Of a stretch of 64,000 nt of DNA, positions 32,266 through 63,967 are shown piece after piece; the stretch's first letter is position 1; each line of letters begins with the position of its first letter. The notes below the pieces were generated by a model. It saw nothing but the letters and a program-made list of their open reading frames with translations. It did not search any database and had not been told where the DNA came from. Location of the stretch: the sequence record LR745206.1. One strand, 5' to 3'. A program made the position numbers and the translations under genes.

Positions 32266-32379
32266 ATTTTATAAATAAATTAAAATAAATTAGGTAGATA
32301 TAAAACTTTTATCTATATTTGTATAAAATAATAACAAAAACGAAAAAAGGGACAATTCCTTTTTAATATATAAGAAATA

Positions 32380-32475
32380 ATGACAACAAATAGTACACAT
32401 AAGAATTTTAGTAAATCGCATAAATGGTTTAGCAACCAATCGTTCGGTACTGAAAGTGTATTGTCATTAAATTAA
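32380..32475 (+). CDS. Putative attenuator leader peptide (His/Phe/Trp) MTTNSTHKNFSKSHKWFSNQSFGTESVLSLN
   Basis: 2 His, 3 Phe, 1 Trp; followed by a terminator and His/Phe/Trp tRNAs. Confidence 0.75.
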   Translation: MTTNSTHKNFSKSHKWFSNQSFGTESVLSLN

Positions 32476-32508
32476 TGTAGAAGTTAAATTAATAAACAAC
32501 AATATTTC

Positions 32509-32538
32509 AATCCGAACTCAAAAGTTCGGATTTTTTTT
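32509..32538 (+). terminator. Attenuator terminator, His/Phe/Trp tRNA block
   Basis: AATCCGAAC-TCAAAA-GTTCGGATT plus T-tract. Confidence 0.85.
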
Positions 32539-32552
32539 GTTTAAAAATATAT

Positions 32553-33135: not shown

Positions 33136-33165
33136 ATGAAAACTAAATTAAAATATAAACGATAG
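33136..33165 (+). CDS. Putative leader peptide (Lys) MKTKLKYKR
   Basis: 4 AAA Lys codons in 9; same GAAGAAATTATGAAAACTA 5' context as the leader at 33630; followed by four tRNA-Lys. Confidence 0.7.
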   Translation: MKTKLKYKR

Positions 33166-33195
33166 GGTTAGTAACCAATTGAAAGTTACTAACCC
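33165..33195 (+). promoter_or_regulatory. 11-bp hairpin starting at the Lys leader stop codon
   Basis: GGGTTAGTAAC-CAATTGAAA-GTTACTAACCC; no long T-tract. Confidence 0.7.
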
Positions 33196-33557: not shown

Positions 33558-33629
33558 CAAGAATAAAAGTTAAAAAATTAGGAATTGACAAAAACAAACA
33601 TTACATTTGTAATATATAAAGAAGAAATT

Positions 33630-33704
33630 ATGAAAACTATTAACAACACATCGAAAAGTTCTAGTCGCTCATCAAGTATGAGTGAGATTCGATTGTATTC
33701 GTAA
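33630..33704 (+). CDS. Putative attenuator leader peptide (Ser/Arg) MKTINNTSKSSSRSSSMSEIRLYS
   Basis: 9 Ser + 2 Arg in 24 aa; own TACATTTG promoter; terminator then Arg/Ser tRNAs. Confidence 0.82.
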   Translation: MKTINNTSKSSSRSSSMSEIRLYS

Positions 33705-33726
33705 TAGTCAAGTATAGATATTTATG

Positions 33727-33757
33727 AAACCTCGAATCTAACGATTTGAGGTTTTTT
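33727..33757 (+). terminator. Attenuator terminator, Ser/Arg tRNA block
   Basis: AAACCTCGAATC-TAAC-GATTTGAGGTTT plus T-tract. Confidence 0.85.
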
Positions 33758-33767
33758 GTTTTAAAAT

Positions 33768-34291: not shown

Positions 34292-34295
34292 CAAA

Positions 34296-34906: not shown

Positions 34907-35084
34907 GAGAGAGGATATGTGATATATAAGATATGAAGAAAGTATTTAAATTTATCACATATCCTTTAAGTAGATATATAAAAAATAGAATTAAATCTAG
35001 ATTAAATTGGTAATAATGAAAATTATTCCTATATTTGTAATTAATAATTAAAACATAAACGAAAAATATAATATATAAATAATA

Positions 35085-35129
35085 ATGAGAGCTTTACATA
35101 CATACAAAATTACGATTGACTTGGGTTAA
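35085..35129 (+). CDS. Putative attenuator leader peptide MRALHTYKITIDLG (His)
   Basis: Single His codon; 3' end complementary to the terminator 5' arm; upstream of HisRS operon. Confidence 0.55.
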   Translation: MRALHTYKITIDLG

Positions 35130-35154
35130 CCCAGCTGTATTTTATATGTATATA

Positions 35155-35185
35155 GCCCAGTCAATCTTTTGACTGGGTTTTTTTA
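35155..35185 (+). terminator. Attenuator terminator before HisRS operon
   Basis: GCCCAGTCAA-TCTTT-TTGACTGGGT plus T-tract. Confidence 0.85.
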
Positions 35186-35207
35186 TGCAAAAAAATAAAG
35201 TAAAGTT

Positions 35208-35411
35208 ATGAAAACAAAAGATGATAGCTGGTACGAGCAAAAAGTTGAAAGTATCAGAAAGAGGAAAAGAAAACTCCATCTTATCCAAGAGCCAAAGGTT
35301 AGAAAGAGAATTAAGGCGGATTTAAAACGTGAGCAAAGAGGGGCTAAAAGATCTTCTAAAAACTCATTAAAGAAATGGATGGAAAACGAAATAAATAAAT
35401 TAAACGATTAA
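35208..35411 (+). CDS. Small basic helical protein
   Basis: 67 aa Lys/Arg-rich ORF. Confidence 0.6.
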   Translation: MKTKDDSWYEQKVESIRKRKRKLHLIQEPKVRKRIKADLKREQRGAKRSSKNSLKKWMENEINKLND

Positions 35412-35424
35412 AAAAATTATAAAA

Positions 35425-36060
35425 ATGGAAATTAAAATTGATAGTACTTATAAAGGAACAAGAATCCTTTTTGCGGAAACAGCTAAGAGTAAACGTGTTT
35501 TACTAAATGATATGATTGAAATACTTGAATCTTATGGATATCAAGAAATAATGATACCAATCATACAAAAACAAGAAACTTTCGCTTCAAAGGTGGGTGA
35601 TGAAAATCAAAACATGATGTATAACTTTAAAGATAGAGGTAATCGTGATTTATGTTTATCACCAGAGTACACAGCAATTGTTCAACAATTAGCCTCTGAT
35701 AGAATGAAGTTTGATAAAGATGTTAAAATGTTCTACATAGGAGAATGTTTTAGAGGAGAAAATACACAAGCTGGAAGATGGAGACAATTCACACAATTTG
35801 GTGTTGAAGTCTTAAATCCATCTAAAGACTACTCTGATGAAATGATAGAAATTGCTACTAAACTAATTGAATTAGTTACAAAAAATTATGAATTAAACAC
35901 AGACGCAACAAGAGGTCTTGACTACTACAATGGTGGAAAGGGATTTGAAATTGCTTGTCCTGAGTTGGGAGCTGCTAAACAAATTTGTGGGGGAGGTTCT
36001 TATGAAGGAGGTATTGGTTTTGCCGTTGGTGTGGACAGATTACTATTATGCAACAGATAA
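35425..36060 (+). CDS. hisS: Miniature histidyl-tRNA synthetase (catalytic core only)
   Basis: YKGTR, LCLSPEYTA, FRGENTQAGRWRQFTQFGVE, RGLDYY, GGGSY, GFAVGVDR; ends with no anticodon-binding domain. Confidence 0.85.
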   Translation: MEIKIDSTYKGTRILFAETAKSKRVLLNDMIEILESYGYQEIMIPIIQKQETFASKVGDENQNMMYNFKDRGNRDLCLSPEYTAIVQQLASDRMKFDKDVKMFYIGECFRGENTQAGRWRQFTQFGVEVLNPSKDYSDEMIEIATKLIELVTKNYELNTDATRGLDYYNGGKGFEIACPELGAAKQICGGGSYEGGIGFAVGVDRLLLCNR

Positions 36061-51368: not shown

Positions 51369-51815
51369 TTAAGTAATTGTTATTCCTATAAAACTAGGTT
51401 TCTTACCTACTAATTTATCCAAATCAAAATCAATATCTCTTCCTAAAAACCCATCATAAATATTGAAATTTATATCATATTTCTTTTCACCATTTGTGTT
51501 TACTTGATTTATATAATCTATACATCTTTTTAATGACTCTACTATATCTTCTGTTATTATAAAATAATCATATCCCTCTACCCAAACATTACCATCACCA
51601 CTTCTAACCTCATTGTTTGGGTTAGATACTATTTCTATCATTAATCCACCTTTACCATGTAATCTTTTATTATACATAGCATCTTGTAAATATATTTTAC
51701 CATTATCAGATATATCATATAATATTTCATTGATATTATCTCCTATTTCTACAAATTCATTTGGTGCATCATCACCATATTTATTTAACTCTTCAAATAA
51801 CTTTAAATGTTTCAT
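51369..51815 (-). CDS. Hypothetical protein (MKHLKLFEE motif)
   Basis: 148 aa ORF. Confidence 0.7.
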   Translation of the reverse strand: MKHLKLFEELNKYGDDAPNEFVEIGDNINEILYDISDNGKIYLQDAMYNKRLHGKGGLMIEIVSNPNNEVRSGDGNVWVEGYDYFIITEDIVESLKRCIDYINQVNTNGEKKYDINFNIYDGFLGRDIDFDLDKLVGKKPSFIGITIT

Positions 51816-52258
51816 AACTTTGTTAAATTAATTCTATTACCATGATGTGATAATTTATATCCGTTTATATTATTTCTTTCTAAATATCTAACATACATTT
51901 TTGTTCTTTGTGATACATAACTCCTTTCTTTATCTTTAGATAGTCCATTTATTACTATTTTCTTAGGATTTTTCTTCTTAATAAAGTCATTTAATATATC
52001 ACCAAAAACAGTTTGTAATATTTTATATGGGTTAGTGTTAACAACCTTACTAACACTATAATAATCTTTATCATGTACATAATATGTTAACTCATAAGTC
52101 ATATCATAACTGTTTTTGGTAAATGCTACTTTGTATTTATTATCTGATATATCAGTGAATTTATACTCAATCATCTTACCATTATCTGATATATTTTTCC
52201 ATTGGTATGAGTCAACACCTTCGAATATTAAATTATATACTGAGTTTAAATATTTCAT
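51812..52258 (-). CDS. Hypothetical protein (MKYL...IFEG motif)
   Basis: 148 aa ORF. Confidence 0.7.
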   Translation of the reverse strand: MKYLNSVYNLIFEGVDSYQWKNISDNGKMIEYKFTDISDNKYKVAFTKNSYDMTYELTYYVHDKDYYSVSKVVNTNPYKILQTVFGDILNDFIKKKNPKKIVINGLSKDKERSYVSQRTKMYVRYLERNNINGYKLSHHGNRINLTKL

Positions 52259-52259
52259 T

Positions 52260-52273
52260 TTAATATATATTAA
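52260..52273. promoter_or_regulatory. Palindromic back-to-back TTAATATATA motif at a divergent junction
   Basis: TTAATATATATTAA fills the 20-nt gap between divergent genes. Confidence 0.6.
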
Positions 52274-52278
52274 ATTCT

Positions 52279-52608
52279 ATGGATATATTTAAAGATATAC
52301 AAGGTGAGGTTGAGTTTTTCTTTGATGATTTAAACTGGACATACATATTAATATATGTGTTTGTTTTATATGGTATTAAACATAAAGAAGAGTTTCAATG
52401 GTTTAATGATTTATTTGATAAGAATAAATACATAAAATCATTTAAAGTTTGGATTGCTGGGTTGATAATTATACTCATATTTACTATATTCAAAGGATTG
52501 GAGAGCGGACTTGAAGTTTCATATATTTCACAAATATTAAGATCCTGGATAGTAGTAATTGTTTTTAATTCTGTTTTTTCAAAAAAGATAAGCCAAATAG
52601 ATAAATGA
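52279..52608 (+). CDS. Small membrane protein (possible holin)
   Basis: Three hydrophobic segments in 109 aa; holin role is a guess. Confidence 0.55.
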   Translation: MDIFKDIQGEVEFFFDDLNWTYILIYVFVLYGIKHKEEFQWFNDLFDKNKYIKSFKVWIAGLIIILIFTIFKGLESGLEVSYISQILRSWIVVIVFNSVFSKKISQIDK

Positions 52609-53369
52609 TATATTTAAAAACGTATGAGGATCTAGATATAGATAAGTATAAAGCTTTTATTAAGAAATATAAAAAGAGTGATTATATATCCACGAAGACT
52701 ATCAAAACAATGAAAGAATTGGGTATAAAAAACGCCTTTAATGAAATAGAAAAGAAAGTTTCTGACTGTTATAAATTTTTTAATAAACAAAATAATGAAT
52801 TATTGAATGATTTATTTTTATATGTAGAAGATGATTTTAATGCTAAAGTTGTATATAGTTGGTTTTCTTTGAAAATATATCCAGATTTTCCACTAAAAAG
52901 TTTTAATCTTACTATAACTAAAGATGATTCTGGTTTACCATCAAAAGCTGGTAAAATACTAGATGATGAAATTAATGTTGTTGATCATATAATTAGAAAT
53001 ATTGATTCTATTGTGGATGATGAAAATAGAAAAATAAAAGATAGTGATAGAAGTGATAGTTGGGTAAGATATACTTCATCGAGGATGAGAGGTAGAAACT
53101 TTCTTGAGAAGGTTAAAATATATCCAGTTATATCACTACAAATTCAACTAAATGAGGATGCAGAAAATGACTTCGGTAATGAAGAATATGAACAAAAGAA
53201 AATAGATTTTCGTAAAAAGAGAGAAGAATTGAAAAAATTCTTAAAAGAAGACATTATTGATAGGTATTTTAGAGCGATGGGGTATAATATAGATTTTGAA
53301 ATTAGTGAAACTAACTCAAGTTATTATCTAACCAATAATTTAAGTTATGATATAATGTGTAAATTATGA
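52605..53369 (+). CDS. Hypothetical protein (MIYLKTYE motif)
   Basis: 254 aa ORF. Confidence 0.7.
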   Translation: MIYLKTYEDLDIDKYKAFIKKYKKSDYISTKTIKTMKELGIKNAFNEIEKKVSDCYKFFNKQNNELLNDLFLYVEDDFNAKVVYSWFSLKIYPDFPLKSFNLTITKDDSGLPSKAGKILDDEINVVDHIIRNIDSIVDDENRKIKDSDRSDSWVRYTSSRMRGRNFLEKVKIYPVISLQIQLNEDAENDFGNEEYEQKKIDFRKKREELKKFLKEDIIDRYFRAMGYNIDFEISETNSSYYLTNNLSYDIMCKL

Positions 53370-53947
53370 TAATTAAGAAATATATAAAATTTATAAATGA
53401 AGAGTTTGATCATTTAAAAAGTAGAGGTGTTGATCCAGAACGCACATACTTTGTTCATGATACTGAATCAAATAATACTTATTTTTTCCTTTATAATTTA
53501 AGTGGTGAGAGTATTGGTTATCAAAAGTATAATCCTGATAATGAAAAGGCAGGTGGTTTAGGTTGGATGGGTAGATATTTCACCAAGGTGAGAAAAGAAG
53601 CAACTGGTCATAGTAAGATAGCTGTATATGGATTAGAAACATATCAAATAGATAAAGACTACTTTTTTATAACAGAAGGTATATTTGATGTTATTAAAGT
53701 TCATAATACCGGTGAACCTGGTATTGCAAATTTAGGATGTTCGGTATCAAAACAAGCTAAAAATTGGTATAATAGTTTACCACAAAGAAAAATAGTAATA
53801 CAAGATAGAGATGATGCTGGTACAGAATTGGGAACAATAGGTGATTATGTTTATACTGTACCAGAACCTTATAAAGACTTAGGTGAGATGCCTCAGGAAG
53901 AAGTCAACAAATTAATAAAGAATATTAAAAAAGAAATAGGATTGTGA
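53366..53947 (+). CDS. TOPRIM-domain (primase-like) protein
   Basis: FFITEGIFD and IVIQDRDDAG motifs. Confidence 0.7.
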   Translation: MIIKKYIKFINEEFDHLKSRGVDPERTYFVHDTESNNTYFFLYNLSGESIGYQKYNPDNEKAGGLGWMGRYFTKVRKEATGHSKIAVYGLETYQIDKDYFFITEGIFDVIKVHNTGEPGIANLGCSVSKQAKNWYNSLPQRKIVIQDRDDAGTELGTIGDYVYTVPEPYKDLGEMPQEEVNKLIKNIKKEIGL

Positions 53948-54366
53948 AGTATTTGAAAAGATTTAATGAATCATTGGATGAAACAGTAATTATAGATTTT
54001 ATCAGTGATATATTTTTGGAATTAAAAGATAATAACAATAACATTGATATTGAGATAATCCCAAGATATAAATATAGTTCGTCTAATATGTACACAATAC
54101 CGGATAAAACAAAGATAGTTGGATTTGATATCAGAATATCATCACAAAAATATCCTTTTAAGTTAAGTGATATTTATGATAATGTTTTAGTATGTATGGA
54201 TTATATGAGAAGTAATAATATGTTTTTAAAATCATTTGATTCACTAGATATATCAAATAATAATAGTGTAGTAGATATTAATTATTTTTATGACTATATG
54301 ATGGGTGTTGAGAAAGATGTATCAAGTAAATACTTTTCTATTAGATTTAACTTGAAAGTTATATGA
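53944..54366 (+). CDS. Hypothetical protein (MKYLKRFNES motif)
   Basis: 140 aa ORF. Confidence 0.7.
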   Translation: MKYLKRFNESLDETVIIDFISDIFLELKDNNNNIDIEIIPRYKYSSSNMYTIPDKTKIVGFDIRISSQKYPFKLSDIYDNVLVCMDYMRSNNMFLKSFDSLDISNNNSVVDINYFYDYMMGVEKDVSSKYFSIRFNLKVI

Positions 54367-54824
54367 AACATTTAAAAACATATAAAATATTTGAATCTAA
54401 TTTAGATGATACGTATTATGATGTAGAATCTATCTTTTACTCTTTGAGAGATTATGGATATGATATTTATGTTGATAAGGAAGAAATACAATTGGATAAT
54501 TATGTTGAAGAAACAATTGCTTTTCATATAGGTAAGAATAATGATAATTCATCATTAGCTTCTACATCTGGTGATCCTTTTGTGATAGAAGGTGAATCCG
54601 AGGATATTAATGAATTAAAAGATTGTATATTAAGAGTTAAAGATTTTTTAAGTGATTGGGTTTGTTATATGGAGATAAGATATAATAAAGAAAGGTTTAT
54701 ATCTATTAATAAAGATGTGAAAATAGAAAATGATTCTTTTTTTGAAATTAGAGATAATAAACTAGTTGATTTCCCTATTATAAGATTAAAAGTATTTTTT
54801 ATAAGAAAAATTAAAAATATTTAA
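54363..54824 (+). CDS. Hypothetical protein (MKHLKTYKIFES motif)
   Basis: 153 aa; first 12 aa identical to ORF 60202..60651. Confidence 0.7.
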   Translation: MKHLKTYKIFESNLDDTYYDVESIFYSLRDYGYDIYVDKEEIQLDNYVEETIAFHIGKNNDNSSLASTSGDPFVIEGESEDINELKDCILRVKDFLSDWVCYMEIRYNKERFISINKDVKIENDSFFEIRDNKLVDFPIIRLKVFFIRKIKNI

Positions 54825-54869
54825 AAAGGGAGACAACCTTTTTAATATATACACGTATAATAAAGACAT

Positions 54870-54941
54870 CGCGGGGTAGAGCAGTGGCAGCTCGCAAGGC
54901 TCATAACCTTGAGGTCGTTGGTTCGAATCCAGCCCCCGCTA
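54870..54941 (+). tRNA. tRNA-fMet (CAT), initiator type
   Basis: CGCGGGG 5' end with unpaired C1, CAAGG-CT-CAT-AA-CCTTG; no leader or terminator upstream. Confidence 0.85.
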
Positions 54942-55028
54942 CTAAAAAATATTAAAATAAATTAGGTAGATTAGAAAAAACTACTTATATTTGTAAAAGA
55001 ATTAATAAACAAGATAATAAATAAACAA

Positions 55029-55115
55029 ATGAACACAATTACTAACATAGCGTCTTACGAATCTTATTATGAAGAGGGTAACCTAGTCAGACGAAATAAC
55101 TATGTCGTAATGTAA
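55029..55115 (+). CDS. Putative attenuator leader peptide (Tyr/Glu) MNTITNIASYESYYEEGNLVRRNNYVVM
   Basis: YESYYEE core (4 Tyr, 3 Glu in total); terminator then Tyr/Glu tRNAs. Confidence 0.82.
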   Translation: MNTITNIASYESYYEEGNLVRRNNYVVM

Positions 55116-55139
55116 GTAATTATATAAACGAATATTTAT

Positions 55140-55173
55140 ACCCAGTCTGACAAATGTTAGACTGGGTTTTTTT
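55140..55173 (+). terminator. Attenuator terminator, Tyr/Glu tRNA block
   Basis: ACCCAGTCTGAC-AAAT-GTTAGACTGGGT plus T-tract. Confidence 0.85.
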
Positions 55174-55187
55174 ATGTCAAAAAATTC

Positions 55188-55255
55188 GGGATGAATTATG
55201 GTGATAGCCGGGTCTGTAAAACCCTAGCAGGTGAGTTCGAGTCTCACACATCCCA
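55188..55255 (+). tRNA. tRNA-Tyr (GTA), atypical short form
   Basis: GGGT-CT-GTA-AA-ACCC; truncated D arm, short variable loop. Confidence 0.65.
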
Positions 55256-55266
55256 CTAAAACAAAT

Positions 55267-55338
55267 GGTCCTATCGTCTAAAGGTTAGGATAACAGACTT
55301 TCAATCTGTTGATACGGGTTCGAGCCCCGTTAGGACTA
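55267..55338 (+). tRNA. tRNA-Glu (TTC)
   Basis: ACAGA-CT-TTC-AA-TCTGT. Confidence 0.88.
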
Positions 55339-55343
55339 CAAAT

Positions 55344-55415
55344 GCTCTATTCGTCTAGTGGCAAGGACATCACCCTCTCAAGGTGAAGACGCGGGTTCGA
55401 CTCCCGTATAGAGTA
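55344..55415 (+). tRNA. tRNA-Glu (CTC)
   Basis: TCACC-CT-CTC-AA-GGTGA. Confidence 0.88.
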
Positions 55416-55426
55416 CAAAATTAAAT

Positions 55427-55498
55427 GCTCCGTTCGACAAGCGGTTAAGTCGTTGCCCTTTCAAGGCAAAGTCACGGGTTCGAATCCCGTACGGAGTA
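55427..55498 (+). tRNA. tRNA-Glu (TTC)
   Basis: TTGCC-CT-TTC-AA-GGCAA. Confidence 0.88.
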
Positions 55499-55523
55499 CA
55501 AACAGACATCAACGTAATGTCTG

Positions 55524-55647
55524 GGTGATGTAGAGCAATTGGTAGCTCATCTGCTAGTTAAATGATGGAATAATCATAATCCTGAAGCTATTATAAAATA
55601 GGCGACACGGTTGGTTCTTGGTGTAGGTTCGAGTCCTATCATCACTA
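55524..55647 (+). ncRNA. tRNA-like RNA with a large insertion replacing the anticodon arm
   Basis: Acceptor GGTGATG/CATCACT, D arm GAGC-AATTGGTA-GCTC, T arm GTAGG-TTCGAGT-CCTAT; about 70 nt insert with small hairpins. Confidence 0.6.
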
Positions 55648-55653
55648 ATACCT

Positions 55654-55736
55654 GGGATGTTATACCGTAGGGGTAGCGGGACAGACTGTAAATCTGTTAT
55701 CTTCGGATTCGGGTGGTTCGACTCCATCACGTCCCA
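55654..55736 (+). tRNA. tRNA-Tyr (GTA)
   Basis: ACAGA-CT-GTA-AA-TCTGT; long variable arm. Confidence 0.85.
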
Positions 55737-55745
55737 CAAAAATAT

Positions 55746-55817
55746 GGTCCATTCGTCTAATGGTTAGGACGCTAGGTTTTCAACCTAGAAATACGGGTTC
55801 GATCCCCGTATGGACTA
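55746..55817 (+). tRNA. tRNA-Glu (TTC)
   Basis: CTAGG-TT-TTC-AA-CCTAG. Confidence 0.88.
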
Positions 55818-55822
55818 CAAAT

Positions 55823-55906
55823 GGGGATATAGAGCGTAATTGGTAGCGTCCCGGGCTGTAAACTCGGTGTCTTTTGATCTTGTAGGTTCGAGTCCTGCTA
55901 GCCCCA
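55823..55906 (+). tRNA. tRNA-Tyr (GTA)
   Basis: CCGGG-CT-GTA-AA-CTCGG; long variable region. Confidence 0.82.
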
Positions 55907-56080
55907 CAAAAAGAAATAATATAATATATTTGGTTTATTTGGTTTATTGAAATATTATATTTATATTTGTAAAAGAATCGTAATCCCAAGTAACCCCTTG
56001 GTCGATTTTTTAACAAATTAAAAAAGATTAAAAGGGAAGGTAAAACTTTTTATATATACATACATATAATAGGAACGAAA

Positions 56081-56164
56081 ATGAAAAATTTAAATAACAT
56101 ATCAATAGCAGTAATCGGGAACGGCGCGGGAGCGATACGTGAGTGGCTGAGTTATGGTATTTAA
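56081..56164 (+). CDS. Putative attenuator leader peptide (Ile/Gly/Ala) MKNLNNISIAVIGNGAGAIREWLSYGI
   Basis: 5 Ile (3 ATA), 4 Gly, 3 Ala; terminator then Ile/Gly/Ala tRNAs, GlyRS and AlaRS. Confidence 0.82.
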   Translation: MKNLNNISIAVIGNGAGAIREWLSYGI

Positions 56165-56183
56165 TTAAATTAAAATATTTCAA

Positions 56184-56215
56184 AAACCCAGTCACGAAAA
56201 TGACTGGGTTTTTTT
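56184..56215 (+). terminator. Attenuator terminator, Ile/Gly/Ala block
   Basis: AAACCCAGTCA-CGAAAA-TGACTGGGTTT plus T-tract. Confidence 0.85.
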
Positions 56216-56227
56216 GTTTTTAAAAAC

Positions 56228-56301
56228 TGGTGAGTAGCTTAGATGGTAAAAGCATCTGTCTTATATACAGAAGATAATGGGATCGTTACCCATCTCACCA
56301 A
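56228..56301 (+). tRNA. tRNA-Ile (TAT)
   Basis: TCTGT-CT-TAT-AT-ACAGA; T-loop ATCGTTA. Confidence 0.8.
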
Positions 56302-56305
56302 CAAC

Positions 56306-56376
56306 GCGAGATGTAGCTTAATGATAAAGCGTCTGCCTTCCAAGCAGAAGACGGAGTTTGATTCTCACATTTCGCT
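56306..56376 (+). tRNA. tRNA-Gly (TCC), atypical T arm
   Basis: TCTGC-CT-TCC-AA-GCAGA; U73. Confidence 0.72.
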
Positions 56377-56381
56377 CAAAT

Positions 56382-56455
56382 AGTCCCTTAGCACAATTGG
56401 TTAGTGCACCTCGCTCATAACGAGAAGGTTATCGGTTCGAATCCGGTAGGGACTA
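56382..56455 (+). tRNA. tRNA (CAT), probably Ile2 (lysidine type)
   Basis: CTCG-CT-CAT-AA-CGAG; C4-G69 and C5-G68 pairs as in TilS substrates; elongator Met not excluded. Confidence 0.7.
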
Positions 56456-56501
56456 CAAAATGAGAAAACATTAAAACCATCTCACCAGGATGTAAAATAC
56501 C

Positions 56502-56573
56502 GCAGTAATGGTGTTAATGATAGCACATGAGACTTCCAATCTCAAGGTGTCGGTTCGAGTCCGATTTACTGCT
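56502..56573 (+). tRNA. tRNA-Gly (TCC)
   Basis: TGAGA-CT-TCC-AA-TCTCA; U73. Confidence 0.85.
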
Positions 56574-56634
56574 CAAGTATTTTAATATATATTCCAATCC
56601 AATTTATGGTTGGAAGATAAAATTAGAATTTATT

Positions 56635-57072
56635 ATGATTTGTAGAATTTGTGAAATTGATAAAGTAGAAGAAGATTTTCATTATCAAACAAAAAAGAAA
56701 GATAAGAGGAAAAAGTATTGTAAAGAATGTGCTAAGGGATATAGGAAGAAGTATTATGAAGCGAATAGAGAAAAATCTATCGAGTATTCCAAAAATACCA
56801 ATAAAAGTTTTAAGATAAAACTACAACAGTATATATGGGATTATCTAACAATTAATAATTGTATAATATGTGGTGAAAATGATCCAATTGTATTAGAATT
56901 TGACCATAGAGATTCGAGTGAGAAGTATATGGGTGTTTGTAATATGGTTAATACTAGACATTCGTTGAAAAAAATAATGAAAGAAATTGAAAAGTGTGAT
57001 GTTTTGTGTAGTAATTGTCATAAAAGAAAAACGGCTATTCAGTTTGATTGGTATAGTAAAATTATAAAATAA
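56635..57072 (+). CDS. HNH endonuclease with N-terminal Zn-ribbon
   Basis: CRIC..CKEC, CIIC..LEFDH..LCSNCH; start ATG 56635. Confidence 0.85.
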   Translation: MICRICEIDKVEEDFHYQTKKKDKRKKYCKECAKGYRKKYYEANREKSIEYSKNTNKSFKIKLQQYIWDYLTINNCIICGENDPIVLEFDHRDSSEKYMGVCNMVNTRHSLKKIMKEIEKCDVLCSNCHKRKTAIQFDWYSKIIK

Positions 57073-57079
57073 AAAATAT

Positions 57080-57155
57080 GGGGGCACATGTTCCAAGGCT
57101 TTGGCGAGTTTGACTTGCAATCAGACTGAGGTGGATTCGATTTCCACTGTCTCCA
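57080..57155 (+). tRNA. tRNA-Ala (TGC)
   Basis: TTTGA-CT-TGC-AA-TCAGA; G3.U70 pair. Confidence 0.8.
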
Positions 57156-57171
57156 CAAAAATTAAAAAGAA

Positions 57172-57912
57172 ATGGAAACATTATATAACATAAATAGTTT
57201 AGTAATCTGGGAAGAAAAGGATCTTAGGATTAGAAAGTTCATAGAGGATACTATGAAAGAGGAAATTAAAACAATATTACTCTCTCAGAATCCAGCTTGG
57301 AAATTCTATCAGATTGAAGCTCCTTGTCTTATACCAAGAGATTTGGTTAATGAGAATTATACCAATGAAGATATTTGGGTACAAGAAACAAAAGATGATG
57401 AAGTTGAATTGGTATTAAAACCTGAAACAACACCAAGTTCTTATGTATATGCTCAACACTTGTTAAATACAAATAGATGTCTACCACCACTTGTTGTTTG
57501 GCAAACATCTAAATCTTTTAGAAGAGAACAAGACCAAGTGATGAAGAATATGAGATTGAAAGAGTTTTATCAACAAGAGTTTCAATGTGTTTATTCAGCA
57601 AGTACACTGAATGATTATCAAGAAAATGTTCTTGAACCAATCAGAAAAATGTTGGAAGATATAATCGCTCTACCAACAAGGATAGTTGAGAGTGATAGAT
57701 TACCTTCTTATAGCCTAAGAACAATGGATATAGAAGTTTATAATGATGATAAATGGATGGAGATTTGTTCAATATCAAAAAGAACCGATTTTCCACAAAA
57801 AGCAGTATTTACTGTTAAGAACAAAGTTATCGAGACTGATTTATTGGTACTTGAAATAGCATTGGGTGTTGATAGAGTATTGTATAATTATATGAAACGA
57901 ATAAATAAATAA
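57172..57912 (+). CDS. Miniature glycyl-tRNA synthetase-like class II catalytic core
   Basis: LKPETT, motif 2 KSFRRE..MRLKEFYQQEFQ, WMEICS, motif 3 LGVDR; ends with no anticodon-binding domain. Confidence 0.75.
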   Translation: METLYNINSLVIWEEKDLRIRKFIEDTMKEEIKTILLSQNPAWKFYQIEAPCLIPRDLVNENYTNEDIWVQETKDDEVELVLKPETTPSSYVYAQHLLNTNRCLPPLVVWQTSKSFRREQDQVMKNMRLKEFYQQEFQCVYSASTLNDYQENVLEPIRKMLEDIIALPTRIVESDRLPSYSLRTMDIEVYNDDKWMEICSISKRTDFPQKAVFTVKNKVIETDLLVLEIALGVDRVLYNYMKRINK

Positions 57913-57929
57913 AAATAAAAAATAAAGAT

Positions 57930-58804
57930 ATGAAAAGGCTGGACGCATTTTAGTCACAGAAGAATATAAATCTTACTGTGACGTTAATAAAATTAAATTT
58001 AAAGTAGAAGAAAGTGTTAAATCTTATGATGATACGACATTATTTTGTCCATCAGGGATGCAACAATTCAAATCTAATTTCAAGGACGAGAATTATAAAG
58101 GAACAATATCCAATATTCAATCTTGTTTGAGATTGAATGATATAGATGAAATAGGTGATGGAACACACCTACTATATTTTAATATGATTGGATTCTTCTC
58201 ATTTAGAGAGTGGACTGTTCCACAAACAATTGATTATTGGATGGAATTCCTTAACTTAATAGGAATTAAACCTGATTATGTTACAATACACCCAACTAAA
58301 CCAGAATGGAGTGAGTGGTATAAAAAATATGAAGTTGAAGTAAGGTTTGATGAAGAGTGTAAATGGACAGATGGTGATATTGGTGGATATTGTACCGAAT
58401 TTTATAAAGATGATATAGAAATAGGTAATATTGTTAATCCACTTGGTACCTGTATAGATGTCGGATTCGGCTTAGAAAGATTGAAAATGGTTTTAGACAA
58501 CCAAATAGTTAGTAAAGAAGATACTCTAAAAGAAAGTATTATGAAAATAATAGAGAGTGGATTCAGACCAGGAAATAATAAACAAGGATATATTTTAAGA
58601 AAACTTCTTAGATTATGTCACCAAAATAAAATAGAAATAGAACATCCGTTTTATATGGATGAAGTAAAAAGACAGGAGAAGATATTAGAGAAGTGGGGTA
58701 AGTTAAAAAATAAACACAATGATAAATCAAAGGAATGGTGGTGGGACACACATGGTATTGATTTAGATTTTATAAAAGAAATTGAAAAAAATGAAAATAT
58801 TTAA
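57930..58804 (+). CDS. alaS: Miniature alanyl-tRNA synthetase (N-terminal catalytic domain), start uncertain
   Basis: YDDTTLFCPSGMQQFK, QSCLR..D, H..YFNMIG, EIGNIV, IDVGFGLERL, GYILRKLLR; the conserved motif lies upstream of the track start 58058. Confidence 0.8.
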
Positions 58805-58946
58805 AAATATAAAAGATGGTGAATTATATATCTTGGTTGAATTAAAACCAGGGATATACACAGCTATCCCAATAAATAGCGGTGATAAACCGATTAGTAA
58901 TTGTAATATGATTGATTTCGTACCAACAATTATAAACCGAAATTAA
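58791..58946 (+). CDS. Small hypothetical protein (51 aa)
   Basis: MKIFKNIKDGELYILVE...NRN, translated by hand. Confidence 0.45.
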   Translation: MKIFKNIKDGELYILVELKPGIYTAIPINSGDKPISNCNMIDFVPTIINRN

Positions 58947-58957
58947 TTTCGGTTAAT

Positions 58958-59030
58958 GCGAGAATAGCTCAGTTGGTAGAGCGCCACCTTGCCAAGGTGG
59001 AGGTCGCGGGTTCGAGCCCCGTTTCTCGCT
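58958..59030 (+). tRNA. tRNA-Gly (GCC)
   Basis: CCACC-TT-GCC-AA-GGTGG; canonical cloverleaf. Confidence 0.92.
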
Positions 59031-59045
59031 CAAGATAGTAGTAAT

Positions 59046-59157
59046 GAGAAGTGTTACTTCGACTGCAATTCGACTAGTCCAGGTTCGAATCCTGGCACCG
59101 GCTCAAATAAATAATGTCGGTGTGGTGTAATGGTAGCACAGTAATAACACACTTCTC
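59046..59157 (+). tRNA. Circularly permuted tRNA-Cys (GCA) gene candidate
   Basis: 3' half (59059-59103) precedes 5' half (59116-59141); acceptor GTCGGTG/CACCGGC, U73, flanks GAGAAGTGT/ACACTTCTC. Confidence 0.7.
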
Positions 59158-59175
59158 AAATTTTCTCTATCTAAT

Positions 59176-59249
59176 GGGGGATTAGCTCAGTTGGCTAGAG
59201 CGCCTGCCTTGCACGCAGGAGGCCATCGGTTCGAATCCGATATCCTCCA
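59176..59249 (+). tRNA. tRNA-Ala (TGC)
   Basis: CCTGC-CT-TGC-AC-GCAGG; G3.U70. Confidence 0.92.
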
Positions 59250-59375
59250 CAAAATATTAGGATATGTGGAAAATATTCTTATATTTGTATAAATAATTTA
59301 TAAACTATCATTTTTCTTTGTCAAAAGGAGAATAAAAAATTTCAAAGAGATTTGAAAAAAAAGAAAAATGTAGTT

Positions 59376-60191
59376 ATGAAAAAAGACAACTTCGGAGACC
59401 GTATGAAAATGTACGAATCTCAAACCTGTGGAATTAAACTTATTCCCAGAATTCCTGTAATCGCTCGTTTAGATGGAAAAGGATTTTCCAAATTTACAAA
59501 AGGACTAAAAAGACCTTATGACGAGAGACTATCCAATCTTATGATTGAAACTGTTAAGTATCTTGTAAAAGAGACTAATGCTAATTGTGGTTATACTCAA
59601 TCTGATGAGATCACTCTGGTTTGGTATACTGATAAGATAGATGCTTCAATTTATTTTGATGGTAGACTTTTCAAGATGTTAAGTGATTTATCTGCTATGG
59701 CTTCTGTTTATTTCAATAGAAGACTTGGTGAATTTCTTCCAGAAAAAATTGATAAGATGCCTAGATTTGATGCTCGTGTTTATAATGTTCCTACTTTAGA
59801 TGAGGCAGTTAACTCTTTCCTTTGGAGAGAACAAGATGCTACTAAAAACTCTATTAGTATGGCGGCACAAGCTTTCTATTCTCACAAGCAACTAATGGGT
59901 AAGAACGGAAGTGATAAACAAGAGATGCTTTTTGAAAAAGGTGTTAATTGGAATGATTACCCATCATTCTTCAAAAGAGGAACTTATATTCAAAGAAAAA
60001 GAATTGTAACTCCTTTCAGTATTGAGGAAATTGAGAAACTTCCACCTAAACACAATGCTAGAAAGGATCCAAATTATTGTGTTGAAAGATGGGTTATTGA
60101 TAAAATCAATCTACCACCACTTTCTAAAATTGATAATAAAATTGGTGTTATTGTTTTTGGTGAAGATGTAAAATTAAAAAGTCCAGTTTAA
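59376..60191 (+). CDS. Thg1-like tRNA(His) guanylyltransferase / 3'-5' polymerase
   Basis: ARLDGKGFSKF, KRPYD, YTQSDEI, FDARV, WREQDA.KNSI; start ATG 59376. Confidence 0.92.
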   Translation: MKKDNFGDRMKMYESQTCGIKLIPRIPVIARLDGKGFSKFTKGLKRPYDERLSNLMIETVKYLVKETNANCGYTQSDEITLVWYTDKIDASIYFDGRLFKMLSDLSAMASVYFNRRLGEFLPEKIDKMPRFDARVYNVPTLDEAVNSFLWREQDATKNSISMAAQAFYSHKQLMGKNGSDKQEMLFEKGVNWNDYPSFFKRGTYIQRKRIVTPFSIEEIEKLPPKHNARKDPNYCVERWVIDKINLPPLSKIDNKIGVIVFGEDVKLKSPV

Positions 60192-60203
60192 CTGGACTTT
60201 TTT
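60176..60203. terminator. Bidirectional intrinsic terminator
   Basis: AAAAAGTCCAGT-TTA-ACTGGACTTTTT. Confidence 0.85.
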
Positions 60204-60651
60204 ATTCGCTTTTGTTTATAAAAAGTTCTATTCTTAATATCTCCGGAAACATATCTGAGATTATCGTATCTAACTCACTTAATGTTACTTGTTCTCTGTT
60301 TCCACCACCATTTATCCAAATAAAGAATTGATAATCTTTTGGTATCATATCACTTAGTCTATCAATATAATAATCTTTTAGGTAAACTAATGATTCATAG
60401 TCCATATTATTATATTTACCATTTTTATCTGATAGTATAATTTGTAATGATCCTAAATCTTCTATTGGGAAATAAAGTTCATCTTTCCATCCATTTGGAT
60501 CACGTGGACTATCTTTATCATCATCTTTATACCACCTTATTAATGGTTTGTAATTTTCATCATCACTAAGACTATTCATTAAGTCAATGAAATCATTAGT
60601 GAAATTTTCATCAAATGATTCAAATATTTTATATGTTTTTAAATGCTTCAT
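60202..60651 (-). CDS. Hypothetical protein (MKHLKTYKIFES motif)
   Basis: 149 aa ORF. Confidence 0.7.
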   Translation of the reverse strand: MKHLKTYKIFESFDENFTNDFIDLMNSLSDDENYKPLIRWYKDDDKDSPRDPNGWKDELYFPIEDLGSLQIILSDKNGKYNNMDYESLVYLKDYYIDRLSDMIPKDYQFFIWINGGGNREQVTLSELDTIISDMFPEILRIELFINKSE

Positions 60652-61133
60652 CTTTGATACCTTTTAGATAAGTTTGATATAGTCATACTTAAAGTAATTG
60701 ATGATTTATTAGTTATAGAGAAATCACCCTTTGTATAAATTTTGGAATACTTTTTATTAATATTAATATTAATATTATCGATTCTACAACTAGTCATGGA
60801 ATTTAATCGATTAGTGAAGCTTTCCAATTCATCATTGAAATCACCTTCATCACCGTCATCAATAGTAGCACTTATATTATAAGTTAATGTTTTTATTTCT
60901 ATATCGATTCTATCATTTATAAATTTACCAAAATCTTCTAAGGTAAGTCTATTACCTCCAGATAAAGAAACTAAAAAATAAGGATCTTTCTCTCCATAAG
61001 ATTTAAATCCCATATCTTTTAGATACTCTTCAAATGATTGAAGTATATCTATATCATTAAAGATAGTTTTATTTATTTCTAATACCTCTTCATCAGTGAT
61101 ACCAACCGATTCATATTTCTTTAAGTATTTCAT
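60648..61133 (-). CDS. Hypothetical protein (MKYLKKYES motif)
   Basis: 161 aa ORF. Confidence 0.7.
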   Translation of the reverse strand: MKYLKKYESVGITDEEVLEINKTIFNDIDILQSFEEYLKDMGFKSYGEKDPYFLVSLSGGNRLTLEDFGKFINDRIDIEIKTLTYNISATIDDGDEGDFNDELESFTNRLNSMTSCRIDNINININKKYSKIYTKGDFSITNKSSITLSMTISNLSKRYQR

Positions 61134-61135
61134 AA

Positions 61136-62125
61136 TTAATTTATTCTAAATATATGATAATCAACACCATTATAATACTCAACATATTCTTTTCCATCAT
61201 AACTAGATAATGTGTGTCCTAAACCATCAGCTTCTACTAATCCATTTGTCATTCTTTCTAACCAATCACTATTAAGGTTTTGTTTTATTATTTTCAATGA
61301 GTCTTCTTCGCCAAAATTACTTACTAATTCGGTAGATATATCATTCTTATAAGACTCTATTTCATTTTTCAAATAAGCTTCAAAACTTTCTTCATCCATA
61401 TCACCATTTTCATCAGCCTTTATATCATCTATATACTCCCAATCTTCCCTATACTGATCACCATCACCAATCATTTCCTTAGCAAGTCCATCTTCATCAA
61501 CACAACCGAACCTAAAGTATAATTTAACCATTAATAAGTCCTGTTCATCCAAACCACTAACATATTCTTTAGCTATTTTCATAGCAGTCTCTATATCACA
61601 AGATATAAAATCCATATCCTCAAATTCATAAATAGTTGCTAAATCATAATGTTTATATAATTGACTTGAGATACTATAAATATCATCCTCTTCCATACCA
61701 TAATCCCTTAGATGAATTCTTAAAGCTTGAACCTCATCATAATCACTCCATCTATCTTCAACAATATTAAGATATGGATATATTTCTTTTAAAGTATTGG
61801 TTAATTCCTTACTTAAATCACCATAATTAACATAATCACCATTTTTATTATAATAAAAACAATAAATCAACTTATCACTATCTAATTCCACATCATATTT
61901 AAACTTACTTCCGCTCCAAGTTTCTTTATCTTTAATATGAGAATATCTACCAGATAATACAGTAAGTTTATTATAATCTAATTTATATTCTAATTCTAAC
62001 CCAGCATCAAGATGCTCTAAAGCTAAGTCTTTTGCGGTATTTATAACTTCCCAATCAATTGACGTATTATTTAAATATGACTCATTATTTGATTCAAATA
62101 AATTATACTCAATTAAATATTTCAT
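61136..62125 (-). CDS. Hypothetical acidic protein (MKYLIEYNLFES motif)
   Basis: 329 aa ORF. Confidence 0.75.
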   Translation of the reverse strand: MKYLIEYNLFESNNESYLNNTSIDWEVINTAKDLALEHLDAGLELEYKLDYNKLTVLSGRYSHIKDKETWSGSKFKYDVELDSDKLIYCFYYNKNGDYVNYGDLSKELTNTLKEIYPYLNIVEDRWSDYDEVQALRIHLRDYGMEEDDIYSISSQLYKHYDLATIYEFEDMDFISCDIETAMKIAKEYVSGLDEQDLLMVKLYFRFGCVDEDGLAKEMIGDGDQYREDWEYIDDIKADENGDMDEESFEAYLKNEIESYKNDISTELVSNFGEEDSLKIIKQNLNSDWLERMTNGLVEADGLGHTLSSYDGKEYVEYYNGVDYHIFRIN

Positions 62126-62202
62126 AACTTTTTTATGTTCTTGTATTATAATCTTATATATTAAACTCAGACTTTAATATATAAGAAAAACATATTTTAA
62201 AA

Positions 62203-62802
62203 ATGTCAACAGTAAAAGATTTAAAAGATTCTCTAAACTTAGAAGGATTAGTAAAAGATAGTTTAATAATAGTTGTTAAAGACGGTAAATTTGCTATCCC
62301 GCAAGAAAACAGATTTGGTTATTTAAATGTGGATGGTCATTATGGATATAAAATAGATGATGAAGTTGTTTACTCTGATAAAAAATATGGTGATGTATTT
62401 TCATTATGGTCAATATTACAAGGTGATATTGAGTTTAATTATAGAAATGATATTGAAAGGATGGGTGGTATGTTTGATTTGGAATCTAATATGAATTTTG
62501 ATGGATTTAATTCTTCATACTTAACTGTTGGTAAGGCTAAGAAACAATTAGATAGGTATAATGATGATGCTGATATTGTAAATATTGGAATGAATGATGA
62601 TCCATTTATTACGATAGATTCCATGGAAGTTATAAATAATGTTTATTTAGATACAACTGATAGTTATGGTCATAAGAAAAAACTAAATTATAAGTTTCCT
62701 TGTTTAATTCTTAATTATGGTAAATCTATTGATAGATTTTTTGATCCTAAAGAAAAGACTAATGAATCGAGAATAATAAAGAAGTTTAATAAATTTAAAT
62801 AG
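62203..62802 (+). CDS. Hypothetical protein with C-terminal NESRIIKKFNKF
   Basis: 199 aa ORF. Confidence 0.7.
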   Translation: MSTVKDLKDSLNLEGLVKDSLIIVVKDGKFAIPQENRFGYLNVDGHYGYKIDDEVVYSDKKYGDVFSLWSILQGDIEFNYRNDIERMGGMFDLESNMNFDGFNSSYLTVGKAKKQLDRYNDDADIVNIGMNDDPFITIDSMEVINNVYLDTTDSYGHKKKLNYKFPCLILNYGKSIDRFFDPKEKTNESRIIKKFNKFK

Positions 62803-63463
62803 TCTTCTTAGTTATCTTAGTATGTATATTTTCCTCTTCCTCCTTTGAAAGGATTTTATCAAGGTACATATAAATATACTTTCTATATCTTTTTATAATA
62901 TTTTCCTCACATACTCTATTAATAGTACCCCATATTTGTTTCCATTGAGATTGTTCAAATCCTCTTGTATCTAATCTATGAATAGCATCTTCGACTGTTT
63001 GACTCTTCTTTGAAAGATCATTAGCTATTGTCCAAGAGAAAGCCATTATTTCTTCTTTATTAGAAAAATACTTATTTTGTTCGATAGGATTTGGTAAGGA
63101 GTATTCCACATCACCTTTTCTCATTGATTGCTCATAATGTATTTTCTCATGTCCAATTATATCATTTACTATTTCTTTGAAATTTGGAATTCTGTTAATT
63201 ATTTTCCTATCACAGATAACAAACATTGGTTTTTTTCTCTCTGGGTGAAAAAGTGCAAAGAATGGTACACCTTTATTTGGTGGTGCATTTTTTTTATCAG
63301 CATCACTAAGTGATGTATAGAAGGCATCATATTCAACAACATCAAAATCATTTTGATTTCCATATTCAACCAAATTATCAAATGTGTTGATTTCGAAATC
63401 ACTCTCTAGTTTAGATGGTATGATAACCGCCTCGAATGTCTTATACTTTTTAATATGTTTCAT
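62795..63463 (-). CDS. HExxH zinc metalloprotease-like protein
   Basis: IIGHEKIHYEQ with downstream YFSNKEEIMA. Confidence 0.6.
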   Translation of the reverse strand: MKHIKKYKTFEAVIIPSKLESDFEINTFDNLVEYGNQNDFDVVEYDAFYTSLSDADKKNAPPNKGVPFFALFHPERKKPMFVICDRKIINRIPNFKEIVNDIIGHEKIHYEQSMRKGDVEYSLPNPIEQNKYFSNKEEIMAFSWTIANDLSKKSQTVEDAIHRLDTRGFEQSQWKQIWGTINRVCEENIIKRYRKYIYMYLDKILSKEEEENIHTKITKKTI

Positions 63464-63472
63464 AATTATCTT

Positions 63473-63967
63473 TTATATTTCAAAGTGATGTGAATCCCAA
63501 AAATCTCCAAAAATCTCACCACCCCATTTAAATCCCCTATTTTTAAAAATATCAATGATATCTTTTGTTATTTTTCCCTTATTTATACTTTCATCATAAA
63601 CATGACTTATTTTACTAGGTTTTGCTGGATTAACTTTTGGGTTTAAGTCAATAGCATAACCCATTGCATGTTTCGATAATTTGTCAGTACCCATAACAAA
63701 TCTAAAGTTATATGCTGTTGTTATATTATCCATTATAATATCAGCATCATTTCTTTGGTGGCTTTTGTCTATTTTATTAATTGGGAATCTTATTTCATAT
63801 AAATCGTTGAATACGTCCTTTGTATTTTGTTCAATATTTTTATTAACTTCCAAGGTTCCTATTTTATGATTTCCATCATAATCAATATAATCTATTGACA
63901 ACTCAACAATATCATTCTCTATATCTATTTTTGTGACTGATTCATTAAACCCTCTTAAATATTTCAT
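63473..63967 (-). CDS. M15 family peptidoglycan peptidase
   Basis: YNFR, SKHAMGYAIDLNP, WGG, DSHHFE. Confidence 0.85.
   Translation of the reverse strand: MKYLRGFNESVTKIDIENDIVELSIDYIDYDGNHKIGTLEVNKNIEQNTKDVFNDLYEIRFPINKIDKSHQRNDADIIMDNITTAYNFRFVMGTDKLSKHAMGYAIDLNPKVNPAKPSKISHVYDESINKGKITKDIIDIFKNRGFKWGGEIFGDFWDSHHFEI

Follow-up and report, generated by a model that had tools for sequence, protein, structure and literature searches.

Attenuation of transcription by a leader peptide is known in Escherichia coli from multivalent attenuators, among them the ilvGMEDA and ilvBN leaders with their Ile, Leu and Val codons and the thr leader with its Thr and Ile codons, and from the his, trp, leu and pheA leaders of other amino-acid operons. 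The pheM leader of the pheST operon places an aminoacyl-tRNA synthetase (aaRS) under the same kind of control. T-boxes bind uncharged transfer RNA (tRNA) directly via Stem I, a specifier codon and the T-box motif, with no translation. Genes for tRNAs are a textbook case of growth-rate and stringent control at promoters, and we know of no leader-peptide control in the tRNA clusters of large phages. Here, we analyze a window of 64,000 nucleotides (nt) without a single N, positions 310001-374000 of LR745206.1, which is the 634,780-bp genome (G+C content of 29.7%) of an uncultured “huge phage.” In this window, a short open reading frame (ORF) and an intrinsic terminator, which we call unit D, precede an Ile/Gly/Ala tRNA array. 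With good confidence, we interpret 55938-56221 as an attenuator of transcription of the ribosome-mediated (leader-peptide) kind that gates this array. Phages of the Mahaphage clade have genomes of this size class and Bacteroidetes as predicted hosts (PMC7162821); the word “leader” is absent from the paper that describes these huge phages.

The short ORF of unit D lies between two promoter-like sites and the first tRNA gene, and the terminator lies between the ORF and that tRNA (Table 1), which is the anatomy of the leader-peptide attenuator class. The first promoter-like site is of the Bacteroidetes sigma-ABfr type (−33 TTTG/−7 TAnnTTTG; consensus from PMC7366714). A first-pass annotation, made from the letters alone, had proposed an Ile/Gly/Ala-rich leader with three ATA codons, and the ORF at 56081-56164 bears this out, with ATA at 56099, 56105 and 56135. 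Residues 7-19 of the leader read ISIAVIGNGAGAI, and the putative sensing codons span 56099-56137 (Ile ×4, Gly ×3 and Ala ×3). Ala, Gly, Ile and Met together account for 12 of the 26 leader residues, against 21% expected (binomial P = 0.0036), and no anticodon species of the array has fewer than two cognate codons there (ATA ×3; GGG and GGA; GGC and GGT; GCA and GCG ×2). Homologues of this leader were found in 8 other contigs. The same annotation had called the ATA codons rare and was mistaken in this: ATA is the commonest Ile codon of the phage (50%, in long ORFs), a usage on which rarity of ATA was rejected as the sensing principle.

The terminator of unit D has a CGAAAA loop and a run of seven T (56209-56215), followed by G and TTTTT. 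The first tRNA starts 6-12 nt past the T-run, too near for a promoter of its own, so expression of the array must go through the terminator. Within the 3' end of the leader, GTGGCTGAGTT (56143-56153) can pair with AACCCAGTCAC (56185-56195) through 9 Watson-Crick pairs and 1 G-U pair, with 1 mismatch (RNAduplex, −9.2 kcal/mol), which is the pairing at 10 of 11 positions noticed at first pass.

Unit D resembles the ilv- and thr-type attenuators in its short leader rich in several amino acids, its intrinsic terminator, an antiterminator competing for the terminator 5' arm and a stop codon whose position lets a ribosome that completes the leader favor termination. The phage units differ from them in that they would control tRNA genes, and aaRS-like ORFs, instead of biosynthetic enzymes, in being viral, in forming a paralogous set of leaders that partitions the tRNA genes, and in that no clear 1:2 “pause” hairpin was identified in them. 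The first regulated genes are thus tRNAs and not members of the classical target class (amino-acid biosynthesis, transport, aaRS), which is the point of novelty and not a failure of the mechanism. As in pheM/pheST, the leader would sense charged tRNA and control a component of charging or decoding, in unit F and possibly in unit D, but the main and first products in the phage are tRNAs, and its synthetase-like ORFs are truncated cores. The likeness to a T-box is that the supply of a specific charged tRNA would be read by a choice between terminator and antiterminator ahead of translation-related genes; in the phage, however, specificity is written in a putatively translated ORF. A T-box riboswitch (RF00230) is ruled out, with no match at E ≤ 1 in 54000-60000 or 31500-35500, and neither the Rfam leader families (His_leader, Thr_leader, Trp_leader, Leu_leader, etc.) nor any known riboswitch matched at this threshold in these two regions. 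The full-text literature, mostly outside subscription journals, yielded no tRNA genes and no virus described as being under leader-peptide control, nor any account, for cells or viruses, of feedback from decoding speed onto the matching tRNA genes. If our reading is correct, these would be the first tRNA genes under ribosome-mediated attenuation, and this the first such system in a virus.

We propose that transcription would start at the host-type promoter (55938-69), at the phage-type motif (56049-58) or at both, and that the 27-codon leader would then be translated. On fast decoding of 56099-56137, the ribosome would arrive at the stop codon and cover 56143-56154, the terminator (56182-56213) would form and no tRNAs would be made. 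Slow decoding, under scarcity of charged cognate tRNA, would stall the ribosome upstream and let 56143-56154 pair with the emerging 5' arm of the terminator. With the terminator blocked, RNA polymerase would enter the Ile(TAT), Gly(TCC), CAT and Gly(TCC) genes, and read-through would probably extend into the aaRS-like genes and the distal Gly/Ala tRNAs (no intrinsic terminator was found on the + strand between 56215 and 60176). We infer from this geometry that slower decoding of the leader codons probably raises the tRNA output of the phage; the signal could be tRNA abundance, tRNA charging or depletion of host tRNAs. Constrained folds of units A to D are consistent with this scheme: when the ribosome is stalled at the sensing codons and the transcript reaches as far as the terminator loop, the 3' part of the ORF pairs with 6-12 bases of the 5' arm, and when the ribosome stands at the stop codon the 5' arm is free. 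The terminator wins at equilibrium, so kinetics must decide, as they do in classical attenuators. A paralogous set of such switches would yield a codon-family-resolved, demand-driven supply of tRNAs.

The core idea of the first-pass annotation is strongly supported, and on a broader basis than it had: a translated leader would be the sensor in a terminator/antiterminator choice ahead of the tRNAs. The same anatomy recurs before nearly every array, in this phage and its relatives, and the composition of each leader follows its own array. The window carries five or six such units (A, A2, B, C, D and F), and at least three more (E, G and H) follow within 36 kb downstream. Four times in the window, the first tRNA lies about 6-22 nt past the T-run of a strong terminator, itself preceded by a short ORF and a promoter-like site. 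Each promoter-like site opens with a tetramer, which is TTAG in A, B and C, TTTG in D and ATTG in F; a 20-nt spacer leads to TAnnTTTG, and an A-rich 5' region, the short ORF and the terminator come next. Jointly, the units split by amino acid almost all of the ~60 tRNA genes of the phage; the only tRNA detected in 100 kb without a unit is a CAT tRNA at 54870, which has just the TTAATATATA motif. With moderate confidence, we extend the reading of unit D to a codon-resolved sensor network of the virus, in which at least eight paralogous leader-peptide attenuators would each sense the decoding of their own codons and together gate almost all of these tRNA genes and some aaRS-like genes.

Unit F precedes a 67-aa Lys/Arg-rich ORF and a 211-aa HisRS-core-like ORF (35425-36060) and no tRNAs. 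The leaders found before the HisRS-core-like gene contain His (MRALHTYKITIDLG in the window, MKHLHTYKIMIDWG in the related contigs L071-73 and MKTLNINTHFHFHFENLELGVH in contig L003), and the counterparts of unit F in relatives carry either a pair of His codons or an HFHFHF leader. These His leaders indicate that aaRS-like genes can stand behind such sensors.

The association between leader and array was quantified across related huge-phage contigs. These were retrieved from IMG/VR using as baits the class II aaRS-like protein (45-91% identity) and the D-type terminator pattern; the HisRS-like protein, tried as a bait, gave 4 loci only. A blind pipeline required a terminator of −10 kcal/mol or lower, a tRNA within 200 nt, and took the longest ATG ORF of 10-50 aa ending ≤100 nt upstream. 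It returned 46 terminator-to-tRNA junctions, of which 45 had an ORF, giving 37 unique leaders. In these leaders, 394 of 1,018 residues (38.7%) matched the amino acids of the array, against 19.3% expected from the phage composition; read in its other two frames or on the reverse strand, the same DNA matched at 16.5-20.3%. When leaders were permuted among arrays, none of 20,000 permutations reached the observed sum-z of 106.7 (permuted values, 4.1 ± 9.4; maximum, 44).

The match extends to codons. All 16 Arg codons of leaders with Arg-tRNA arrays are readable by the Arg anticodons of their own array (16/16): CGN occurs in Ser/Arg leaders with ACG, GCG or TCG tRNAs and AGA in leaders with TCT tRNAs, AGA representing 78% of the Arg codons of the phage. 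Where arrays are merged or differ in content, the leaders differ with them. In L003, the Glu/Tyr and Gly/Ile/Ala arrays are merged behind a single leader (IYIGYIAEGGYEAG/MNTLIYIGYIAEGGYEAGSF...), and a Gly/Thr/Glu(/Ile/Leu) array in L021 has the leader ...ILILGTEGTTEILEGI... The 19-tRNA array of L023 (50% G+C), with Glu, Ser, Tyr, Gly and Cys, follows the leader MFATSYSYCYYGSSSSSVSYGYESEEGSMGGKV (SYSYCYYGSSSSSVSYGYESEEGS), in which 25 of 32 residues match the array (P = 4e−9) and 25 of 25 matched codons are decodable. The leaders share a conserved N-terminus, MKT/MNT-I-N-N, and are themselves conserved in contigs of 28-50% G+C. In the relative LR756502.1 (L001), the units are syntenic, and the peptides have diverged while their composition is alike; the mini-leader of unit A2 is kept there as MKTKRKYKR.

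In the units of the window, the segment most complementary to the terminator 5' arm lies late in the ORF, its end falling 3-27 nt short of the last base of the stop codon. A swap control, from which leaders whose own arm shares a 6-mer were left out, gave stronger duplexes for cognate than for non-cognate leader:arm pairs (mean quantile, 0.228; Wilcoxon P = 1.1e−4). The quantiles of units A, B, C and D are 0.00, 0.03, 0.06 and 0.06, which puts the unit D pairing within the best 6% when set against non-cognate leaders, and the duplex of unit F (−13.6 kcal/mol) was matched by 0 of 300 shuffles. The in-ORF segment co-varies with the arm: the E-type arms CCCTCAG, CCCGAAC and CCCCTAG face the perfect in-ORF complements CTGAGGG, GTTCGGG and CTAGGGG at the same peptide position, and unit A and its L001 homologue show a compensatory change (GTTCGG:CCGAAC versus ATTCGA:TCGAAT). 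Co-variation was read from duplex predictions, given that a MAFFT alignment of the E-type set placed the differing arms out of register; the D-type arm is fixed by the search pattern, so that co-variation is not scorable for D-type units. In these, a TG(G/A)CTG strand is present in 9 of 9 leaders and is read in three frames, as W-L, as N-G-C/N-D-C/N-G-L and as M-L, which suggests that the RNA, and not the peptide, is under selection.

Several points weigh against this reading or limit its reach. The evidence is computational throughout and the phage is uncultured. Taken alone, the pairing in unit D is not significant against shuffles (P about 0.11), and its antiterminator, pairing 56143-54 with 56184-94, is modest, with −9.2 kcal/mol versus −18.1 for the terminator. 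No convincing antiterminator was found in L002 at 6959, in L044 at 7739 or in unit H, and the hairpin of unit A2 lacks a T-run. Homologous units were counted separately, so the effective sample is smaller than 37, but an artefact of phylogeny alone is made less likely by the block structure seen across unit types and by the rearranged arrays. Mixed leaders hold only 2-5 codons per amino acid, which bears on their sensitivity. Extra tRNA eases slow decoding only where tRNA abundance, and not the amino acid, is limiting. Finally, the promoter-like motif at 56582, within the array, may free the aaRS-like genes from leader control.

The same parts could work with the opposite polarity, efficient translation of the leader promoting read-through, for example by a ribosome that melts the terminator. 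Array transcription would then rise with plentiful cognate tRNAs, as a positive feedback or a check of translation competence. The composition match does not fix the sign of control, and in unit A2, where the stop codon adjoins an 11-bp hairpin (33165-33195), a ribosome near the ORF 3' end could occlude the hairpin, so that this unit may act by direct ribosome occlusion. Yet the stop codons of units A to D lie 17-33 nt 5' of the terminator arm, beyond the reach of a terminating ribosome, which argues against this polarity. A terminating ribosome masks the complement of the arm, which falls within the final 3-27 nt of the ORF, and the geometry is that of classical attenuators switched on by slow decoding. 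We therefore regard the opposite polarity as unlikely.

We also give little credence to the units being independent small RNA (sRNA) or micropeptide genes, with arrays expressed by constitutive leak through the terminator or from unseen promoters. It is true that each unit is laid out like a typical sRNA gene, that unit F precedes protein genes and not tRNAs, and that weak Rfam sRNA matches (Qrr, Spot42, CyaR and AgvB) fall over the terminators; these matches are, however, far under the gathering scores, and an sRNA identity of the units was rejected on this ground. Independent genes would leave unexplained the link between composition and tRNAs and the codon-anticodon match, a link that tracks array content in the merged or differing arrays of L003, L021 and L023, as well as the co-variation of the in-ORF segment with the terminator arm, and the distance from T-run to first tRNA leaves no space for a promoter. 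Least credible of all is chance, that is, untranslated short ORFs of an AT-rich genome and terminators that merely close upstream operons. Short ORFs are easily found, the unit D pairing alone falls short of significance, and no Shine-Dalgarno sequence was found at the leaders. This absence is no objection to translation, because Bacteroidetes mRNAs normally lack such sequences and are A-rich 5' of their start codons (PMC7366714). Chance is further contradicted by the confinement of the composition match to the ORF frame, by the permutation result, by the shared N-terminus of the leaders and their conservation across G+C contents, and by the promoter-like sites that unit D has for itself past the end of the preceding tRNA array.

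If attenuation by slow decoding is correct, the phage would top up exactly those tRNAs that become limiting in infection. This could happen, for instance, once the AT-rich phage mRNAs demand more than the host pool supplies, or in response to a host defense that depletes or cleaves particular tRNAs, and would explain the tRNA sets of huge phages as supplied on demand per codon family and not constitutively. Leader composition would predict ambiguous tRNA identities, such as CAT as Ile2 and not Met, and neighboring aaRS-like genes. It becomes testable whether phage tRNAs respond to host tRNA depletion, and the units could offer synthetic biology compact natural sensors of several amino acids.

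Table 1. Positions in the window of the parts of unit D, of the genes 3' of it and of the other units
Feature	Coordinates	Strand	Details
Unit D promoter-like site	55938..55969	+	TTTG 55938-41, 20-nt spacer, TATATTTG 55962-69; putative function
Unit D second upstream motif TTTATATATA	56049..56058	+	Candidate phage-specific promoter, 23 nt 5' of leader ATG; putative function
Unit D leader ORF MKNLNNISIAVIGNGAGAIREWLSYGI	56081..56164	+	27 codons + stop
Unit D antiterminator upstream strand GTGGCTGAGTTA	56143..56154	+	In leader 3' end, 10 nt before stop-codon end
Unit D intrinsic terminator (attenuator)	56182..56221	+	13-pair stem 56182-56194/56201-56213, −18.1 kcal/mol
First tRNA block	56228..56574	+	Ile(TAT) 56228-56302, Gly(TCC) 56306-56377, CAT 56382-56456, Gly(TCC) 56502-56574
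Internal TTAATATATA motif	56582..56591	+	Possible leader-independent promoter for genes 3' of it
145-aa ORF	56635..57072	+	CxxC and HNH-like motifs by eye
tRNA-Ala(TGC)-like	57082..57156	+	Weak; relaxed ARAGORN threshold only; weak Rfam tRNA/tmRNA clan match
Class II aaRS catalytic-core-like ORF, 246 aa	57172..57912	+	Closest to GlyRS; without anticodon-binding domain
AlaRS N-terminal-domain-like ORF, 284 aa	57930..58804	+	TIGR00344 score 77.2 vs cut-off 457
Distal tRNA block	58958..59250	+	Gly(GCC) 58958-59031, weak Cys(GCA)-like 59033-59104, Ala(TGC) 59176-59250
Unit A	32290..32540	+	TTAG 32290-93, TATATTTG 32314-21; leader 32380-32475 MTTNSTHKNFSKSHKWFSNQSFGTESVLSLN (HKFW type, before His/Phe/Trp/Lys tRNAs); antiterminator strand 32441-32448; terminator 32509-32532 + T-run; array 32554-33104: His, Phe, His, Phe, Trp-like, Trp
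Unit A2	33136..33195	+	Mini-leader MKTKLKYKR 33136-33165, nine codons; four tRNA-Lys 33209-33558
Unit B	33578..33761	+	Promoter-like 33578-81, 33602-09; leader 33630-33704 MKTINNTSKSSSRSSSMSEIRLYS (S/R); antiterminator strand 33685-33701; terminator 33726-33755 + T-run; array 33768-34291: Arg(ACG), Ser(TGA) ×2, Ser(GCT), Ser(GGA), Arg(TCG)-like
Unit F	35006..35186	+	Promoter-like 35006-09, 35030-37; leader 35085-35129 MRALHTYKITIDLG; antiterminator strand 35115-35128; terminator 35154-35179 + T-run
Unit C	54962..55175	+	Promoter-like 54962-65, 54986-93; leader 55029-55115 MNTITNIASYESYYEEGNLVRRNNYVVM (Y/E); antiterminator strand 55085-55093; terminator 55140-55167 + T-run; array 55186-55907: Tyr-like, Glu ×3, tRNA with insertion, Tyr, Glu, Tyr
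Unit E	downstream of window		Leader MTTMNLNMTMNLTLNVVNITLCNIRPTEGSDLFREIVM (N/L/T/V/I/M/R); 20 tRNAs: Asn, Leu, Val, Ile, Thr, Met, Arg(AGR)
Unit G	downstream of window		Leader contains APVNPQPQDQDP (P/D); Pro, Asp ×4, Ala, Pro
Unit H	downstream of window		Leader MTTTQQIQQQQINQTD (QQIQQQQ); Gln ×3

Among the genes 3' of unit D, the tRNA list of the first-pass annotation was recovered for Ile(TAT), both Gly(TCC), the CAT tRNA, Gly(GCC) and the Ala(TGC) at 59176, and its second Ala(TGC), at 57082, was found only at the relaxed threshold. The CAT tRNA is plausibly an Ile2 tRNA (lysidine CAU), as its sequence is closer to the phage tRNA-Ile(GAT) (ungapped identity of 71%) than to the other CAT tRNAs of the phage (57-62%); D-type leaders have no internal Met. 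The tRNA-Ala at 59176-59250 has G3:U70, read by eye.

Four ORFs (the 145-aa HNH-like one and others of 246, 284 and 51 aa) separate the tRNA blocks. Judging by its motifs, the 145-aa ORF probably encodes a homing endonuclease and represents an insertion between the tRNA genes; it has no Pfam or NCBIfam match, and a homologue with 60% identity lies between tRNAs in L002 and L054. A GIY-YIG-like, homing-endonuclease-like ORF, judged by eye, also lies between tRNA genes in LR756502.1 (~20585-21210). Arrays with homing-endonuclease-like ORFs, aaRS and Thg1 are a feature shared with the tRNA clusters of T4, of T5 and of the huge phages catalogued in PMC7162821.

The first-pass annotation had placed a GlyRS-like gene and AlaRS in the operon, and neither designation is confirmed. 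GlyRS is the best family for the 246-aa ORF (E = 1e−15), whose sole Pfam match is the tRNA-synt_2b core and whose residues 75-208 match GlyRS chains in the PDB (E = 7e−8), but this is a core only, which lacks the anticodon-binding domain and scores 57.4 in NCBIfam PRK04173 against a cut-off of 312, and so falls short of a full-length GlyRS. L002 and L003 keep the same order, with the array first and the class II aaRS-like gene behind it. Homologues of the 246-aa protein were also found in two cultured jumbo phages with Proteobacteria hosts, Sinorhizobium phage Phosso (L075, PV764938.1, 19594-20753; 61% identity), where it is annotated “serine-tRNA synthetase,” and Xanthomonas phage XbC2 (L076, OP292654.1, 19893-20783; 53% identity). 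In both, the gene is directly 3' of one tRNA (Ser(GCT) in XbC2); the annotation within 20 kb on either side shows single scattered tRNAs and no arrays, and the leader search was not run there.

The 284-aa ORF has homology to the N-terminal part of AlaRS; its family score is far below the AlaRS cut-off, and its 5' end (57930-58060) has a frame break. The start codon and “GAC GCA” share one frame (57930-57953), and homology to AlaRS continues in the −1 frame (57950-58804). The same break, with a conserved “GAC GCN,” is present in L002 (~11690-11720), L003 (~10765-10800) and L025 (~9155-9180). From its occurrence in four phages, this looks like a conserved frameshift or unusual initiation and not a sequencing error.

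A Thg1-like tRNA-His guanylyltransferase gene (59376-60191; Pfam Thg1, 2.8e−29), a further gene of tRNA maturation, adjoins the arrays, and its region (59280-60202) has its own promoter-like site, TATATTTGTA, and a bidirectional terminator at 60176-60202. In the array of unit C, a tRNA-like gene at 55524-55647 (Rfam tRNA, 40.9 bits) spans 124 nt, which points to ~50 inserted nt; the ARAGORN model has a 31-nt intron beside the anticodon, and its Ser(ACT) call with that intron is doubtful. In the array of unit A, ~70 nt between the Trp-like tRNA and tRNA-Trp (32955-33032) are not called as a tRNA by any tool.

The motif TTWATATATA occurs 17 times in the window (34-63982), against 4.95 expected, mostly 5' of gene starts and on both strands. 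It stands 6-45 nt before start codons and also before the lone CAT tRNA at 54870 (examples at 52260, 54842, 56049, 56582, 62155(−), 62174 and 63973(−)), often with an AAAGGGA-like sequence ahead of it, and TT(A/T)ATATATA is a candidate phage-specific promoter. On the two strands of 51812-63967, at least eight ORFs start with almost the same N-terminus (MKYLK..., MKHLKTYKIFES...) and differ beyond it; they look like a paralogous gene family.

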